A DNA stretch of 64,000 nt from Sminthopsis crassicaudata (lineage: Eukaryota), in the NCBI RefSeq assembly GCF_048593235.1, contig NC_133622.1:251104055-251168054 (forward strand). The letters are read 5' to 3'. Under the pieces are notes generated by a model that worked only from the letters and a program-made list of their open reading frames with translations, was not told the DNA's origin and did not search any database. A program made the translations under genes and the position numbers. Positions 53,393 to 64,000 of this stretch are shown piece after piece; the stretch's first letter is position 1; every line of letters begins with the position of its first letter.

Positions 53393-56300
53393 ATGCTCTC
53401 CTCTCAGCTCTTCTGCCTCCTGGGGCTGCTGGCCATGGGGAGCCTGGCCTGGAACACCTTCCCCCGACCGGGACAGGTAAGCCTGGCCCCCCCAGTCCAC
53501 TTTGATCAGAACCCCATTTTCTCTTTCCATTGTATCCCAACTTCAGTTCTGTCCCCTGTCCATCCCAGACTGCGAACCTCTCCCCTGGCCCTGGGGTCCT
53601 TCCCCTCAGTGTCTCGGTATCCCTCCCAGCCCCTCTGCCCTGTGTCCAGATCCAGTCCTACTATCTGGAGCCCCTTGCTCTCCTAACTTTCCAGCTCCCA
53701 CTCCTTCCCTTGGTTTTCCACCAGGGTCTGGAACAACATGGAGAAGACTCTGGGGACATCTCAGGAAGGTTAAAAGCCCTGGGTGGGATGCTGGGCCTGT
53801 GCCACCGACCAGTTAGGAAAGCCCCTCCTCTGCCCACGCCGCCACAACGAGATGAAGGCCCTTTGTAGTTTTTGAAGGCTTGCCCTGATTGGCGTCCCAA
53901 GCCCCTCAGCCCATTCCCTCTTCAGGGGCAGGTAGGGGTCTCCCTCCTCACCCTCTCTGCCCCCAGAGCTTCCACAGCCTGCTGCCAGTCACCCAGGACC
54001 TCAGGGAGCGATTCAAGGCCTTTCAGATCCAGTACAACAAGAGCTACCCAGATGCAGCAGGTGGGCCTCTGGCACCCTCCCCAATCTGTACATGTGGATG
54101 GCACAGTGTAGACCTCCCGCAGCCGTGGGTGGCACAAGCACTGCGCTCACACCTGCCTCCACTCGTTATGTGGGGGATTCTCCAGAGCCGTCACTTCCTT
54201 TGGTCCCCTTCGCTAGCACTGGCCAGGAAGCCAGGAGAACCACATCCTCTGGCTTTGGTTCTCTCTAAGAGGGGAGTTGGATTAGGTGGTGACTAAGGTG
54301 CCTCCCAGCTCCGACTTGTGGTCTTAAGTTCTAAGTCTTCCTGCCCCCAGCTGGGATTCTGGGTTCTGGGTAATAGGGTCCCTCCCGGCTCCAAGATTCA
54401 TGTTCAGAGGTTCTGTCTGGCTCCCAACATTCCTCTCGCACAGAACCTCTTGCTCTAGGGCCCCCTCCTGGCCCCTGGAGCCTCCCCTGCACACCCACAT
54501 CCCCTCAGAGAGATGGAGGGGGCTGGCCGTGTGAATGGCAAGGAGGGAATTTCTGTGCTTATGTGACCTCTGCCTCTCATCACTGGGGGCCCTTAGCTAA
54601 TGGGGAGACGCCCACGCCAGGCCCAGCAGGGATGCCCTCTCCCACTTGGGTAGGTATGCATTGGATAGATGGATGGGTGGATGGATGGATAGACAGATGG
54701 ACAGATGGATAGATAGATATAGATAAATAGATGGATAGATAGATGGACAGATGAACAGATAGATGGATAGAAAGATAGATAGATGGGTGGATAGATAGAC
54801 GGACAGATAGACAGATGGATAGATGGGTAGATGGATAAATAGATAGATGATGGATGAATAGATGGATAGATGGGTAAATAGATGGAAAGAAAGATAAATA
54901 GGACAGATGGACAGATAGAGAAACAGATAGATATAGATGGATGTTTGGATAGTTGATAGGTAGATGGATGAATAGATAGACAGATAGTCACTGGAATTTC
55001 CAAAGCTCTGTTAGGGAAGGTCTTTGGTGACAGGGTTCCCATGTAGATAGTTGACCAAATCTTACCAAAATGGCTATCACATGAATATTACCTCATTATT
55101 AACTCCATTTTACAGAGGAGCAAATGGATGGTCAGGGAAGTAATGCCCTTCCGACCCCACAGGAACAGATCAGAGAGGGCAATGGGAGCCGAGGGGAGAG
55201 AGTGAGCTATTGAGGGCTCTAACCCCTCTCACTTGGGCAGGGGTAGAAGGCACTGCAGATGGGTCCATAGGGACAGTGGTTCAGTGGCTCTGAAGGGGAC
55301 ACCTCAAGGCATCCCAGGTGGGAAAGGATGCAGAAACTTTCACTGGGGGCAGAGGAAGATCCAGTGCTTCTTCCTACCCAGTTGTCCCATAGGGCCCTCA
55401 AATCCCTCTCTAGAACAAGAACATCGTTTTAAGATCTTTGCTGACAACCTGGCTCGAGCCCAGCAGCTGACGGAGGAGCACCAGGGTTTGGCCCAGTTTG
55501 GGATGACCCAGTTCAGTGACCTCACAGGTAAGGGGGTCCCAATCAATTAGAACTAAAAAAATCGCCCCTTAGAATCAGGCTCTTGGGAATGGCCAGAGGC
55601 GTCACAGTCTGGAGATGAAGGTTGCCTAGACAGTGTCTGGGTCGCCCCATTTTACAGATAAGAAAACTGAGGCTTAGGGAGGTTGAGTAACTTGCCCATC
55701 ATCACATAATTCATAAATGTCAGGGAAGGAATTTGGACTGAAGTTTTCCTGTCTCCAAATCCAGTATTCTATCCAAGTCTTGGCTCTAGGGAGCTTCTGG
55801 TCTACTAGACCCACTTCCTGTTGTCTCTCTTTATCAGGGTTTTCAAGATTAAAGCCCCGACTCCTCCAGGGTTTGCTCTGATCTCCTGAGAGGCACATGA
55901 AGATTATTGTCCATGTTTTATAACTGAGAAAACAGAATCCCAGAAATGGAAAAGAACTTACCCAAGAGTAGTCAGGTTAGGGCAGCAAGATGGTGCAATA
56001 GATAGAGAGCTGGAGTCAGAAAGACCTGAGTTCAAATCTGAATCCAAATTTACCAGCTATATGACCTTGGATAAGTCACTTACCCCTCTTCACCTTAGTG
56101 TCCTCATCTTTAAATGAGCCAGAGAAGGAAATGGCCAACCATTCCAGGGTCTCTGCCGAGAAAACCCCAAATGGGGTCACAAAGAATTGGACATGACTGA
56201 ACCACCTGGGAGGTAGAGACAGCTATCCTTTCTTCCTGTCTGGTTCTCCCTCCCTTCCTCTCTTTCCTTTCATTCCTTCCTCCCTTTTCTTTCTCTGTCC

Positions 56301-59300
56301 CAAGCTCTGACAACACTCCTTGGCACAGTGTCTCAGTTGGCCAAACCTCCTCCTCATTACAATCAAGCTTCCTATCTAGACTTGAGATGAGAAAGAAGAG
56401 CCAGGAAGCAGCTTCCTGGGTAGCTGAACTCAGAGCCCAACCCGGCAGGTATTGGTCAGTTCTGCCTGCCTAACTTTGAGACCACAGAACCTATCTCTTG
56501 GTCTTAAGCTAGATCATGCTTATTTTGAGAAATAAACATAATGCTCCCAATTCTACAGTAAATTCTACAATTTAAATGTGCAGGAAGCAGTGGGATGCAG
56601 TGAAAAGAATGGTGAGCTTGGAATCATCACTTCCCTCCATGCCCCTCACTCTTCTCTTTAAAATGGAAAGATTGGATTTGATGGCTCCTAGATCTATGGG
56701 CATAGAAGTTAATTTTTTAGGATGAACCCTAAGGGCTCTTTCTAGGAGATCCTATTATTTGCTCTTTGGAAGCAGGGGATTTGGTAATGAAGAGGGTTTT
56801 GGATATTTGAGTCCTACAACTCTGGGGTCCTTATTGGGCCCAACTTTAGTGGATCCACCATCAAGTAAGCTGACTTCAAGCAAATCTTTCCCTCTCTGAA
56901 TACCAGCTTATGTAAAATTAGAGAAAAGTTGTTCCCTAAATGTTGGCATCCAAATTCCTCCTCTCGGAATCAGATAAATCTAACCATAAAATAAACAACA
57001 AAGAGACCAGGGAGGTTAATAGGATCCTAGAAAACCTAGGTATGATAGACATCCAGAGAAAACCGAATAGGGACAGAAAGGAATACACAGTTTTCTAGGC
57101 AGTACATGGTACCTACATAAAGACTGACCATGTATTAGGGCATAATCAAATCACAATCAAATGCAAAAAAGGCAGAAATAGTAAATCTTTCCTTTTCAGA
57201 CCACAATGTAATAAAAAGCCAAAGATTAGATTAAAAATCAATTGGAAATTAAATAATCTAATTCTAAAGAATGAGTGGATCATGGGATAGCTAGGTGGCC
57301 CAGTGGATGGAGCACCAGCCTTAAAGTCGGGAGGACCTTTGTTCAAATGTGGCCTCAGACACTTAACACTTCCTAGCTGTGTAACCCTGGGTGAGTCATT
57401 TAACCCCAATTGCTTCAGCAAAAAAAAGAAAAAAAAAAGTATGGGATGCAGCCAAAGCAGTTCTTAGGGGAAATTTTATATCTCCAAATAGCTTTGTAAA
57501 TAAAATTGAGAAAGAGATCATCAATGAATTAAGGATGCAACTAAAAAAGCTAGAAAGAGAACAAATTAACCATCCCCCAATTAAATACCAAATTAGATAT
57601 TCTGAAACTCAAAGGAGAGATTAATAGAGACTAAGAAAACGATTGAGCTCACAAACGTTAGCACGGTGACTAGAAATGGAAAAGAACTATGTCCACGGGC
57701 AGGGGCTTTGGGTCTAAGGCCACTGAGGCCCCCATTTGTCTGCACAGAGGAGGAATTTCGCTGGCTTTATCAACCATCCCGGCCCAGCTACTCAGAGCCC
57801 AGAGTGAAGACAGGAGGATACCCAAGACTGCAGAGGCTGAAGACTCGTTCCTGTGACTGGAGGAAGGCGGGAGTCCTGAATCCCGTGAGAGATCAGGTAC
57901 CAGTCACCAGCTTTCTTTCACCCCTCCTATCCCAGCTGGCTTTGTCCCGGCCAGACCACCTTACGAACCTGCTGTCCCCTAGCTCTTTCCTTAAGAACTC
58001 TCCTCTCCTTCCCTCCTGGATGGACAGAGGGAGGCAGAGAACAGGGAAACCAGCTATGGCAGAAAATGACTTCTTCCCACAGAAAAATTGCAACAGCTGT
58101 TGGGCCATTGCCGCTGTGGGCAATGTTGAAGCCTTATGGGCCATCAAGTACCAGCAGCACTTCAATCTCTCTGTGCAAGGTAGGGGGGACGCTGCTTGGG
58201 TAGGGGAGCATTGCTGGGGAAGGGGGTCTCCCGGAGCAGGGCCTCCCGAGGCCTTCGTGAGTAGGCATGTGGGAGCCTGCAGACCCTGCAACCCTGGCTT
58301 TCTCCTGAGTCTGTCCCGGGCCCCCTTCTCTTCCTCGTATGCAGTCAATCCCCAATTCTGTCCAGATAGTCCCGTTCTCTGTGTTCTGCTGCCCCTTCTC
58401 TCCTGATATCCGCCATCACTCCCTGCTCAGCGTTGCCCATGGTTGTCCCTCAAACCAAAGTCCTCTCCCTCCTCCACCTTCCCTTTTACCCTGGCCAGCC
58501 CTTTGCTCACCCAGCTCTGCAGCCTCAGAGCCGCCCGCGCTTTCCTTCTCCCTCACTCAGCATCCCCAAATGCTTGCTGAGTTTGATGTGTTCTAATTGA
58601 CCCATTAATAAGCACCTGCCCAGCGCCCCCCCCCCCCCACCCGGGGAGAGGAGAGAAGCAATAGAAATGTCTAGAAGTAATTAAATACTGAATGGATACA
58701 GATCCGCCCAGGAGATGGGGGCCAGGCCCCTGAGGGAAACAAAGAGTTCAGAACTAGCACTGAGGAAGTGTGGCCATCCTAGGCCGGGGGCACAGCCTCT
58801 GCAAAGGGGGGATTTTGTTTTTGATTAAGTGGTCTCCTTCCCCACATTGTCATGGACCAAGTCCCTCTGTGAGCTCGCAGAGGGCAGGCCCACTGTCTGT
58901 ACTTCTGTGAGTAGCACACAGTAGGTGTGTCCTTGTTTTTCTATGGGAACGTGGAATAAGGGGGGAAAGGCTGGGTCTGGCTTTGGGAAGTCTGGGTTTG
59001 GATCCTTGACCTCAACAGCTCACTCCATGTCTCACGGTGGCCATCTTGGCCCCACCACCTGCCTCGGGAGGTTAAGGTTGAGGTCCCTAGAAATGGGGGC
59101 TGTGAGGAGTCCCCGGGCAACCCAGTACTGCCTCTGGGGAACCCGAAACCCTAAGTAGAAAGTTCCCAAGTCAAACTGCCGGCACTTACTGAGGAGGTAA
59201 CCAGGGCCCACTGAAAGGATACAGCAAAGGAGCGTGGGAAGCCCACATGGTTGGCGAGTAGGGACATGACGGATCCTGGATTCTTCCTTGCGCCTGAACT

Positions 59301-60829
59301 ATGGTGAAGCGATGAGCCAGCAAGGCCGGCTTTGGGGATCCACACAGAAAACTGAGGCGCCCTCCCCCCATCCCCACAGAGCTGCTGGACTGCCGCTGCT
59401 GTGGACAGGGCTGTGAGGGTGGCTTCGTCTGGGATGCCTACACGACCATCCTTAAACAAAGTACGTGCATCCTGCTCCCCGCCCTCCCCCCGGGGGCCCC
59501 AGAGCTCCATCTCCCTGGGATGGACTCCCTGGCTGGGCCTTACATGGCCAGGGGCCTCTGAGTCCTCTCCCTCCCAAACAGGCGGCCTGGCCGAGGAGCA
59601 GGATTACCCCTACAGACCCCAGCTCTCCAATGGCTGCCAAAAGAAAATAAAAAAGGCCTGGATCCATGACTTCTTGATGCTGCTGAAGGAGGAGAATTGT
59701 GGGTGCCGGGGCCTGGATCTGAGGCCGGAACACGGGAAAGGAGGCGCTGGGCACCCACTGGGAAGGCCAGCTGCGGCTGCTAGCTAGCCCATTGAGCCCT
59801 GGATGACTCGGCTGTCCCATCTACAAAATGGAGACGCCCTCTCCAGCAAAGTTCTCATCCTATTGTACACACCCGGGGGGCTCAGTCCCAAACCTGGGGT
59901 GCTTACCAGTTAGCTGCTGCCTGATCTGGGGGTGCTCAGAGGTGGCAAAGGGAAAAAGCCCCCAGCTGCCCCCCATTAGTTAAAGTATTTGGGGGAGTAG
60001 ATAGGACAGGGCATCAGCCTGAACCAGCCCCAAGGCCCTGGAAAGGGAAGGAGCAAAGTGGGAACCTTAAGTCAGGGTGGGGCCTTAGGGATGGGTTCCT
60101 CTTGGGGGTGCAGGAACTCCCGATCCAAGAGCTGGGGCAGGTCTAAGATTTCCATTACCTGGGACACTCGTTCCCCTTGTGCAGAAATGGGGGGGCTTCT
60201 ACAGGCCCTTCTGCTCTCCCCTCCCCGTTCTAATAGCACACTCTTCCCTAGACATGGCCCAGTATTTGGCAGAAAATGGACCCATCACTGTCAGCATCAA
60301 CGCGGTCCTCTTGCAGGTGGGGCAAGAGCAGGGGGCGGGGAGCTGCCAGCTCCTAGACCCTTGACCCCCAAGGGCTCATGGTCTGTTCCCTCCCTCATCA
60401 GAGTTACACAAAAGGGGTGATCAAACCAGGGCACAACTGTGACCCTGAGTACGTGGACCACGTGGTGCAGCTGGTGGGCTTTGGCCAAAGTGAGTGCTCG
60501 GGAGATCTGGGGGGGCCTTGGCCAGAGCCATCACCCCAGCCGCCCCTCACGGCTTCCCGATCTCCCTTGCAGTCCACAACTTTACCTACTGGATCCTCAA
60601 GAACTCCTGGGGCAGCCACTGGGGAGAAAGGGTAAGTGAGGCTCCAGGGGAGCAGGGGAAGGAGGCAGCTGGGTCTGCCCCCTCCAGCTGCACCTAACCA
60701 GGACCCCCCCCCCCCCAGGGCTATTTCCGGTTGACACGGGGAAACAATGCCTGCGGCATCACAAAGTACCCACTGACTGCTGTGCTGAAGGGTAAAAGCC
60801 GGGCTCTCCAGATGCGATGCCCCAGTTGA
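53393..60829 (+). CDS. CTSW: Cathepsin W (papain family C1A), 352 aa, 11 coding exons
   Basis: Exons: 53393-53476, 53967-54060, 55414-55527, 57748-57896, 58083-58179, 59380-59460, 59582-59698, 60252-60316, 60402-60489, 60573-60631, 60719-60829; total 1059 nt. ERFNAQ-like propeptide ([17 protein letters not shown]) and catalytic Q (RDQ), C (NSCWA), H (DHV) and N (KNSWG). AATAAA at 60894-60899. Position between EFEMP2 and FIBP fits synteny. Confidence 0.93.
54655..54990. repeat. Complex (GATA/GGAT/GACA)n tetranucleotide microsatellite in CTSW intron 2
   Basis: gatagatggatgggtggatggatggatagacagatgg... Confidence 0.95.
55978..56205 (+). mobile_element. Older CORE-SINE (MAR1-like)
   Basis: gggcagcaagatggtgcaatagatagag...aaatggggtcacaaagaattggacatgactgaac. 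Confidence 0.75.
56990..57650 (+). mobile_element. L1 ORF2 (endonuclease/linker) fragment with a nested SINE (about 57285-57437)
   Basis: aagactgaccatgtattagggcat, tttcagaccacaatg and tatgggatgcagccaaagcagttcttagggg are L1 ORF2 motifs. Confidence 0.8.
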
Positions 60830-62441
60830 AGACTCCCCTAAGAGTCCCCTCCCCCCATGCTCATGGCCCACAAGGCATCCTGTACTTGAACTCAATAAAG
60901 CCGCTGGTCCATGGCTCTCAGTGTGCTGGCAAATGGAGGGTGGGAAAACTCCTGGAGAAAGGAGAAAGCAAGGAATTGTGGGAGCCGGGAAGGCCATTGC
61001 AGTCTATGGCCATCTGGTCCGGCTCCCACTGGAACAGCTTGCTGAGGGGTCACTGAGCCAGAGGGTGGGCATCTGAGGGGTCTCCCCCATCTTTATGGTG
61101 AGGAATACAGTGAGTGCATGTGTTCATGTGTGTGCAAGTGCAGCGGCCCAAGACTGGCCATATTCTACAGCTGGCAGTCCACTAAGACCCCCAGATCCTT
61201 TTCAGAACACATCTCCCCCGCCCTCCCCAGCTCTGCAGCCCTCCAAGTGTGGGGCCTCCTTGAATCAAGGGTTCAAATGGCATCTCCAACATTTACTAGC
61301 TGTGCGACCTTGAGCAGGTCACTTAACCTGTTTACTTGGGCTTCCTCTGCAGAAAAAAGTGGGAGACTAGCTCCTCCCTGAACCACGGTCACAGGGGTAG
61401 CATTTAGCCCGTCAGTGCCCAGGGCCTTCGCACAGACTCAGCGCTTGGGGCTCTCAAGCTCGCACAGGGTCGGTTCCCCTCTGCTGGATGAGCCGGCTGT
61501 CAGGGCCCATTCAGCACCGGGCCCAGAGTCGAGAGCAAGCTGCTGGAGACCCCAGCCGGGCAGACACCGGGCCCTGAAGGCCGCCTGAGTCTGGCCTAGT
61601 GCCCAGACCATCCTCCACCTGGCTTCTAAGTGAAGCCCACTGGGAATCTGAAGAGCAGAAAGCCGGCCTCTGAGAAGGGGCCCCTGGGGGCCACACACAC
61701 AGAGGCAGGAACCCCTGCTCCCATCCAGGCGCCCCCTCTGTCCCCAGGAGTTGCTTCCCAAAGAGCTCTGCCTGAGGCCAGGCACTGCTCGCTCTCCTCA
61801 GGGGTTTGGGGTGCCCCTAGTCCAGGACCCGAATGCAAATCCTGCCTTACTCTCTAGTTGGGTGACTCTGGGCAGCCTGTCTGCCTCAGTTCCCTCTGCT
61901 GTCAAATGAGCTGGGGTGACAGAGATAGCCCACAGGAAGTTGTGGGGAGTCAAAAGACAGAACCACATTTGAGAACATGAACATCAGACCTGGGGCTGGG
62001 GGGTTGGGGGGCCCAGAACAGCCTAAGGACCCAGGGCCCCAGCCTCCGAGCTCCAGGGGCCTCCTGCAGCCTGGGTCACCCTCCCTGCCCCCAGCTGCTC
62101 TGGGCCCGAGGATCCCCCTGGGGAGACCCCCTGGCCAGGCCTCGCCCCAGGTCTGCAATTTATTATCAGCACAAAGAGGCCTCAGGAGTGCCTGCGTGGG
62201 GGCTGGGCTTCCCTGCCGGCCCGGCTCCCTGTTCCTCCCCCACCCCGTTCCACAGGGCAGGAGGAGCCCAATGGGGGCCCAGGGAGCAGGTGTCCTGGGG
62301 CTGAGGCCCCCCAGGGCCCAGGTTCCCCGGCTGAGCGTGGAGGTGATGAGCAGGGCTGGCCAGGGGTCCCCTCCCCCCCTCCCCCTTTGGCAGCAGGGCC
62401 CAGCAGAGGGCGTGCTGGGCGGGCGTCCGGGCTTCGGGGCC

Positions 62442-63506
62442 TCAGTCGTGGTACATGCGCAGGAGGCAGCTGCGCAGCGTGACCATGTAGCGATCCCAGA
62501 GGGCCTGGTGCCTGCCAATGCAGAGAAGCTGCTCAGAGAGGGGCACACAGGGGTGGGGGGCAGGGGGCAGTGGGGCAGCAGGGGACCCTCACCGAAAGCC
62601 ATCCAGGGAGTGGACGGAGGCAGAATACTGGTTCAGGAAGAGCCGGACATCGTTCAGCGGCCACCGGTCCGAGCGGCACGGCTCTATAAACTTTAGGGAG
62701 ACAGGAGGCCTGATCTTTTCAGCCCAACAAGGCACAGTGGAGACCCCAACAGGCAGGAGGGGGGTGGCCCCAGCACCGGGAATCCCTACCTTTTCAACCA
62801 GATCCACAAACAGGTCTCGCACGTCCTTGGTGTGGGTGAGCTTGGAGGCGATGTTGACCAGCCCTCGGGACAGGTTCTGTGGGGCCGGGAAGCCAAGGTC
62901 TCGGGTCTGGCCTTCTCCCTCAGGACCCCAAAAGCCCCGGGTAGCACCCCCCCTCCCGAGGGGCTGCCAGGACCGCTGGGCCCCCTGCGGTGTGCACAGC
63001 CAAGCTGGCCACGGAGGTTTGGCAAAGGCCCCTGGTGCGCCGACCATGTGCGGGGAAAGCCGAGGAAAGCCGCTCCCCGAGCTGAGCCTCGGCTCACATG
63101 GGGAGCAGGAGCTTGGAGGGCTCCAGGGGGGTTGCGGCCCAGGGGACACACCTTGAAGTTAGCTTCCATCTCTGGAAAGACACTGAGCTTCCCTCGGAGA
63201 GCAGTGCACACCAAGCTGGGGGGAGGGAAGGAGGGGATGCTTCTGGGCCCTAGATTTCCCAACCCCTTCTTGAGCCCTGGACCTCCCCTCCCCAGTTCCG
63301 GATCCCCTCCCCTGAACCCTGGATCCCCCCTCCCCAGTCCTGGATCCCCTCCCCCAGTCCCCAGGACTTCAGATCCCCCTCCCACCGCCCCGGCCACCTC
63401 TTGTGCAGATCGAGCAGGTCCTTGTCGGCCACCAGCACCTTGAGCTCCTTCAGGTCCTGGAGAAACTCCTTGTCCAGGTCCACATCCATGTCGTCCACCT
63501 GAGAGT
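62442..63506 (-). CDS. FIBP: Acidic FGF intracellular-binding protein, last five exons (5' part beyond the window end)
   Basis: Exons: 63398-63506, 63152-63215, 62790-62876, 62593-62690, 62442-62511 (TGA). Peptides [54 protein letters not shown] and [28 protein letters not shown] on the minus strand at 62159-62164. Confidence 0.96.
63279..63380. repeat. About 21-bp degenerate C-rich tandem repeat x4 in a FIBP intron
   Basis: ggatcccctcccc(tgaac/cagt)cct units. Confidence 0.7.
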
Positions 63507-64000
63507 CTGCAGGGGGAGAGCTGGCTGAGGCCCAGGAGCCACCCATGAGCAGCCATGTCTGGCCAAAGCCCGCAAGGGGATGGGCCTCGGGCACCGAAAA
63601 GCAGCCTGGCTGGCTGGGAGGCAGGAGGCCCAGGTTCTGGGGCACAGTCATTTCCAGGTTCGAGTCGAGGTCTGGGTTCAAATCTTGCCTCAGACAATGA
63701 CTAGCAACATGCCTGGGCTTCAGATGGGAAAGGCTTCCCCTGATGTTCCTGGGACTCAGTTTCCCCCCAGGGAAGGACAGGACTGAAGCCTGGCTATTCC
63801 TGCTCCCTGTATTAGTCTGCCAGGCAAAGCCCACTGGGGTCCTGGGAGGGGAAGAGCAGGTGGGACTCAGAGCCAGGAGCCCTCTGTGGGGAGGGGGTCA
63901 GGAGGCTGCTTACCTGGGAGGGGAAGGAGGAGGGGGGCTGCTCACACACAGAGGGCCTGGTGGTCACCCATGGCGGGGGGGAGGGAAGGAAGTACAGGGG

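Follow-up and report, generated by a model that had tools for sequence, protein, structure and literature searches.

Likely exonisation of an ancestral intron as the source of the His-Asn loop of placental cathepsin W

The 1997 paper on the cloning of cathepsin W (CTSW) reportedly described a segment of about 21 residues, inserted between catalytic His and catalytic Asn, as a hallmark of the protein. A CTSW gene that has an intron at this place and no such insertion is found in the marsupial Sminthopsis crassicaudata (the fat-tailed dunnart, here the dunnart), in a stretch of 64,000 nt (NC_133622.1, positions 251,104,055 to 251,168,054, forward strand) that is called the window here. The locus raises the question of where the placental loop came from. 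A preliminary description proposed that the marsupial keeps an ancestral intron and that the eutherian loop arose by its in-frame retention. We put the probability that intron 9 was exonised in stem placentals, the placental loop being the former intron, at about 80%.

The dunnart gene and intron 9 across tetrapods

The CTSW coding region lies at positions 53393..60829 of the window on the plus strand. It has 11 coding exons, which were placed by exact mapping of the public protein P0011 (NCBI 'cathepsin W [Sminthopsis crassicaudata]', 352 aa); the public annotation already splices intron 9. Exons 1-4 are at 53393-53476, 53967-54060, 55414-55527, and 57748-57896, exons 5-8 at 58083-58179, 59380-59460, 59582-59698, and 60252-60316, and exons 9-11 at 60402-60489, 60573-60631, and 60719-60829 (including the stop codon), all on the plus strand. 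A tblastn search of P0011 against the window covered the whole protein, with 100% identity per exon where there was no intron overrun. Exon 9 (60402..60489, 88 nt) contains the codon of catalytic His287 (60459-61), codes for 29 residues plus one base, and ends in phase 1 after VGFGQ. Exon 10 (60573..60631, 59 nt) resumes with (I), contains the codon of catalytic Asn307 (60602-04), and ends at 60631 and not, as first described, at 60632. Exon 11 (60719..60829) encodes a C-terminal extension that ends in RCPS before the stop codon, and an AATAAA is located downstream of the stop at 60894-60899.

Intron 9 (60490..60572, plus strand) is an 83-nt phase-1 intron with the sequence GTGAGT...CCCTTGCAG. 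It has a GTGAGT donor, a run of seven G, a pyrimidine-rich 3' part, and a CAG acceptor. Read in the exon-9 frame it contains no stop codon and gives the same read-through peptide as was quoted previously; its length is 3n+2, so the downstream frame is lost on read-through. His287 and Asn307 are 20 residues apart in the spliced product, and both this distance and the count of 11 exons agree with the preliminary description.

Several features identify the gene in the window as orthologous to cathepsin W of other species. P0011 has precomputed Pfam matches to PF00112 (peptidase C1) and PF08246 (I29 propeptide), and its best solved-structure relatives are papain-family enzymes. In an alignment of 69 CTSW proteins, Q147, H287, and N307 are invariant; at least 90% of the sequences, the dunnart one included, have C153. 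The C-terminal Cys-Pro-x motif is also retained, C350 being invariant and P351 near-invariant across tetrapod CTSW. An open reading frame with an FIBP exon (63250..63834, minus strand; Pfam PF05427, 38.4 bits, cut-off 21) identifies the tail-to-tail downstream neighbor, which is the same in dunnart, elephant, sheep, tamandua, and hare. Placental cathepsin W, or lymphopain (papain family C1A), thus shares with the dunnart protein the FIBP neighbor, the I29 propeptide, the C1 domain, the catalytic Gln/Cys/His/Asn, and the C-terminal extension ending in Cys-Pro-x, and 9 of the 10 dunnart introns are common to both in position and phase. The dunnart gene differs from its placental counterparts in having 11 coding exons instead of 10 and in being without the insertion of roughly 20 residues. 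Mouse CTSW is about 51% identical to the dunnart protein, with 37 residues from His to Asn compared to 20. The corresponding distance in human CTSW is 39 (His291, Asn330), and the human gene has 11 exons, 10 of them coding, and a Cys153, His291, Asn330 triad (review PMC11171618).

Each public CTSW protein was mapped exactly on its own genomic locus with a small script, which gave gene structures for nine genes. Five of these have 11 coding exons and a phase-1 intron 9. Exon 9, intron 9, and exon 10 measure 88, 83, and 59 nt in the dunnart, 88, 97, and 59 nt in platypus, 91, 124, and 59 nt in softshell turtle, 91, 1606, and 59 nt in Xenopus laevis, and 91, 292, and 77 nt in rattlesnake. The other four genes have 10 coding exons and no intron 9, with exon 10 fused to exon 9. 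The fused exon is 210 nt (91+60+59) in elephant (Afrotheria), sheep (Laurasiatheria), and hare (Euarchontoglires), and 198 nt (91+48+59) in tamandua (Xenarthra). All other CTSW introns, including the short neighbors 8 and 10, are kept in position and phase in 9/9 genes. Because frog, turtle, snake, platypus, and dunnart share the position and phase of intron 9, the intron is ancestral to tetrapod CTSW, as had been proposed, and is retained in the marsupial. By comparison of these gene structures, intron 9 was lost once, before the placental radiation; the placental DNA comes from four species, one per superorder, that share ancestry, and the marsupial intron DNA from the dunnart alone.

CTSW has additional copies in some lineages. 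Several 'cathepsin W-like' paralogues occur on one chromosome in platypus (L001; P0110, P0128) and echidna (P0124, P0126). The platypus gene mapped above belongs to this set and so may not be a strict one-to-one orthologue of therian CTSW. Frogs have tandem CTSW duplicates, seen as pairs of entries that share a contig in Xenopus laevis (P0154/P0189), Rana, Discoglossus, and Spea, and P0130 (Engystomops, 612 aa) is a predicted fusion of two CTSW copies with a short loop in each.

Length and structure of the His-Asn loop

Loop length was compared between the conserved GFG and W. The loop has 5-11 residues (median 7) in 27 amphibian proteins, 7 in three turtle proteins, 7 in three monotreme proteins, and 7-8 in 14 marsupial proteins from eleven species. 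Squamates have 13 residues in 14 of 15 proteins and 14 in the remaining one. In 121 placental protein clusters, the loop ranges from 10 to 29 residues, with a median of 25 and a mode of 27. The non-placental range is therefore 5-14 residues across 62 proteins, with 7 in the dunnart, and the expectation that outgroups would be without the long insertion was borne out. On this protein comparison, the long loop is new in placentals rather than a general feature of cathepsin W. Since the long insertion is confined to placental CTSW, its absence in the dunnart is no argument against orthology.

The dunnart loop resembles that of cathepsin F (1m6d), which is the named cathepsin most similar to dunnart CTSW among solved structures. 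The two align without gaps across the His-Asn hairpin and so share the 7-residue loop, which confirms the CTSF-like loop that had been suggested for the dunnart enzyme. Cathepsin F differs in being a separate gene and in being without the CTSW C-terminal extension. The preliminary description also supposed that the marsupial enzyme, with its short loop, might display an activity that has proved difficult to show for human CTSW; this is a speculative but reasonable idea.

AlphaFold models were built on the 69-sequence alignment. In the dunnart model, the hairpin is tight, with strands at residues 287-297 and 300-306 (pLDDT 93-97), and intron 9 splits codon 297, beside the two-residue turn at 298-299. 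The mouse model has strands at 289-299 and 319-325, and the approximately 20 residues between them are coil with a pLDDT of 51-67. Pairwise identity among 38 placentals is 0.31 in the loop versus 0.73 in the rest of the mature domain. In the papain fold, the tip of the His-Asn hairpin is far from the active-site cleft. These models and identities fit an insert that is a tolerated, weakly constrained, and probably disordered extension at a surface turn.

The loop has also changed length in other ways. Several placentals have shortened it again, to 10 residues in hedgehog, Etruscan shrew, and Rousettus, 13 in gundi, and 17-18 in moles and tree shrew (shortened-loop proteins P0095, P0143, P0020, P0151, P0037, P0090, P0050, and P0085). 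As the loop has been cut back to 10-18 residues in several placental lineages, its full length is dispensable there. In squamates, the same hairpin tip has grown; this case differs from the placental one in that intron 9 is kept and 6 residues were added. Rattlesnake exon 10 (L009 12343-12419) is 77 nt compared to 59 nt elsewhere, which places the growth on the 3' side of intron 9. The squamate growth is independent and may have come about by an acceptor shift or by an insertion within the exon.

A number of public non-placental models have a false 'placental-like' loop of 21-39 residues in which all or part of intron 9 is read through. These include platypus P0131, P0133, P0125, P0129, and P0127, softshell turtle P0185, and corroboree frog P0181. 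They are UniRef/Ensembl-type or metaclust entries, and NCBI models from the same species splice intron 9. They are either annotation artefacts or real retention isoforms. A 1.8-billion-protein representative set was also searched with a 57-residue query made of dunnart exon 9 and the intron read-through. This search returned one true relative, P0003, and three unrelated matches; P0003 matched exon 9 only, and no protein in the set aligned to the intron-encoded part of the query. P0003 is a predicted sugar glider isoform X2 of 285 aa in which exons 6 and 7 are skipped, so that the mature domain is 67 residues shorter.

Origin of the placental insert and splicing of intron 9

The sequence of the placental insert was compared directly to intron 9. 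Local alignments of the four placental inserts with intron 9 of dunnart, platypus, and turtle did not score above dinucleotide shuffles under two scoring schemes. Short introns that are truly homologous (intron 8, and intron 10 with placental intron 9) also fail between placentals and dunnart, so the local test is near-powerless at this distance. Global collinear alignment of insert and intron 9 gave z values of about 0-2.4, and values against unrelated short introns were equally high, which indicates generic intron-likeness only. A match seen by eye between dunnart GGCCAGAGCC..CCCCAG and elephant/tamandua GGCAGAG.CACCCCAG was dropped, the local alignment being non-significant. The 'W...PQPP' pattern that the preliminary description saw in both the dunnart read-through and the human insertion did not hold up either: a langur sequence is without the W, PQPP-like strings are limited to primates among the placentals seen, and the alignment does not exceed shuffles. 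The other placental orders seen carry Arg/His/Pro/Ser mixes in the insert.

Features of a former intron can be seen in the insert itself. The junction at its start reads G|GCAAGT in elephant, A|GCAAGG in tamandua, A|CCAAGT in sheep, and A|GCACGG in hare. The intron 9 donor is GTGAGT in dunnart, platypus, and turtle (A|GTGAGT in dunnart and platypus) and GTAAGC in frog and snake. In 4/4 placentals, the insert start corresponds to the donor consensus with C for T at +2, and 3-5 of the six positions match. The elephant start matches GTRAGT at 5/6 positions, and of 952 windows across the elephant CDS, 3 do as well. Purines, and G in particular, are abundant in the body of the insert, whereas pyrimidines make up 65-85% of the final 20 bases. 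A donor-like start, purine-rich body, and pyrimidine-rich end occurred together in 0 of about 950 CDS windows per species, and a collinear alignment to 31 short introns as good as that of the inserts was reached by 5 of 548 CDS windows; the criteria for intron-likeness were picked after data inspection and the four species are non-independent, so these frequencies are support and not proof. No vestige of an acceptor AG was visible at the 3' border of the insert in the four placentals. Intron 9 is open in the exon-9 frame in dunnart and also in platypus. The case for exonisation is built on position, timing, and these vestigial intron features, and the alignments gave no specific homology between insert and intron. 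The proposal of in-frame retention is supported at its core by the ancestral site, the placental loss, the extra 60 (48) nt at the junction, and the short loop of the outgroups; its claim of a specific resemblance was not demonstrated.

We infer the descent of the insert from intron 9, and likewise the order of the mutations, as follows. In the dunnart, intron 9 is a short intron of the ordinary kind that is spliced efficiently and goes back to the tetrapod ancestor, and it lies at what the models place as the tip of the beta-hairpin that links the strand of the catalytic His to the strand of the catalytic Asn. In stem placentals, its splicing would have ceased and its sequence would have been fixed as coding (exonisation, or 'imprecise intron loss'). 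Exons 9 and 10 would thereby have been fused, with about 60 nt of former intron yielding an insertion of roughly 20 residues. What probably disabled splicing was a T>C change at +2 of the donor (GT to GC), with the acceptor AG lost at that time or later. Retention would have been tolerable because the intron was short, GC-rich, and stop-free in the exon-9 frame and lay in a surface turn. Present-day introns 9 are 83-1606 nt long, none is a multiple of three, and all exceed 60 nt, so at least one indel has to be assumed. We consider it probable that the insertion that defines CTSW is in this sense a fossil intron, short, GC-rich, and free of stops, whose donor changed from GT to GC in a stem placental and which has since been translated as a disordered and fast-evolving loop. 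A single process of this kind is the most economical account.

The main alternative is that intron 9 was lost precisely, by recombination with reverse-transcribed mRNA, and that an unrelated in-frame insertion of about 60 nt arose later in the same loop. Mammalian introns are most often lost precisely, and this counts in favor of the alternative, as do the absence of a specific insert-intron homology and the tolerance of the loop for indels (13 residues in squamates and 11 in some amphibians). Protein alignment locates the insertion no more finely than within the 7-residue loop, and this loop is prone to indels (squamates +6 residues). The alternative nevertheless needs two rare events on one branch and in the same 7-residue loop, and it leaves the donor-like start and intron-like polarity of the insert unexplained. 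Both short introns next to it, 8 and 10, are still in place, and no duplication source for the insert was found. Self-matches of the insert within its own locus were weak (p 0.02-0.14) and fell at non-corresponding places in each species; internal duplication was rejected as its origin for want of a source that is consistent across species. We regard precise loss followed by insertion as unlikely.

Much less probable still is a long loop that is ancestral and was intronised or deleted in non-placentals. The formal symmetry of the comparison would allow it, and several parallel events would be required. Amphibians, turtle, squamate, monotreme, and marsupial share both the place and phase of the intron and the short loop, and the short loop recurs in the paralogue cathepsin F.

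Intron 9 is spliced in dunnart RNA. Four public runs (X1, X5, X10, and X13) were compared as contigs with positions 59300-60900. Contigs from X5 (study P2) and X13 (study P5) join 60489>60573, skipping 83 nt with GT..AG borders, as the preliminary description had predicted. The contig with this junction also splices introns 8 and 10, and other contigs splice introns 6 and 7. Exons 6-11 are covered by spliced RNA contigs, which reach 60900, the end of the stretch examined. Intron 9 was not covered by any contig in X5 and X13; contigs give presence and not levels, so a rare form that retains intron 9 may still exist. In X1 and X10, the contigs represent unspliced material (DNA or pre-mRNA) and span intron 9 with zero indels, so the run of seven G and the length of 83 nt stand, X1 being possibly the sample behind the assembly itself. 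The extra G that would have made the segment 84 nt long, a concern raised at the outset, is absent. It is scarcely credible that intron 9 is a model artefact and that dunnart mRNA keeps the segment, for instance because the assembly is one G short: the segment has no stop when read on from exon 9 and would need one more base to be a multiple of three, but the exact junction occurs in spliced contigs of two studies, the G run has no indel in unspliced contigs of two further runs, and 14 marsupial proteins from eleven species have a loop of 7-8 residues.

Two other observations were made in the same RNA contigs. In the poly-C tract of intron 10 (about 60697-60708), the X1 contig is one C shorter at 60704, the only length difference found. 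Either the length is polymorphic or the homopolymer was misread; as the site is in an intron, the protein is unaffected. In both RNA runs, an unspliced contig from 59669 to 60281 spans intron 7 (59699-60251) with roughly half as much depth as the spliced contigs have and coexists with the spliced joint 59698>60252. Read-through of intron 7 adds 29 residues before a stop, and a comparable read-through of intron 7 forms the end of P0018, 'isoform X2' of the wombat. These contigs point to substantial retention of intron 7, or to pre-mRNA.

Relation to known cases and significance

Imprecise intron loss, in which a whole intron is exonised (de-intronisation), has been described in plants (PMC4443532). 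The CTSW case matches it: one clade lacks an ancestral intron, the exons on either side are joined, and extra in-frame sequence lies at the junction. It differs from the known imprecise losses in being old, as it would predate the placental radiation, and at this age sequence homology between insert and intron is no longer detectable. A related case is that of exitrons, intron-like segments inside coding exons with a length that is a multiple of three (PMC4484396). No evidence of exitron-like alternative splicing of the placental segment was seen. Our literature search, which did not reach the gene-structure papers of 1998-2000, found no earlier statement of an intron origin for the CTSW loop. 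Exonisation is thus a known kind of event, and the CTSW instance is apparently unreported within the literature searched.

The fixed conversion of a whole intron to coding sequence is a recognized route with few well-documented mammalian cases. For CTSW, the 'before' and 'after' states are both living and annotated, and the event would date to the placental stem. Its product is a feature that defines a human protease that matters to immunology and to antiviral research; CTSW serves influenza A as an entry factor (PMC9431242). For annotators, the non-placental models that read through intron 9 are a warning, as several of them mimic the placental loop. The textbook account needs correction, because the His-Asn insertion belongs to placentals and does not characterize cathepsin W in general. 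For enzymologists, there is a rationale for loop-deleted CTSW constructs. Marsupials, monotremes, reptiles, and amphibians provide natural loop-less orthologues with which to probe any role of the loop in folding, ER retention, or activity.
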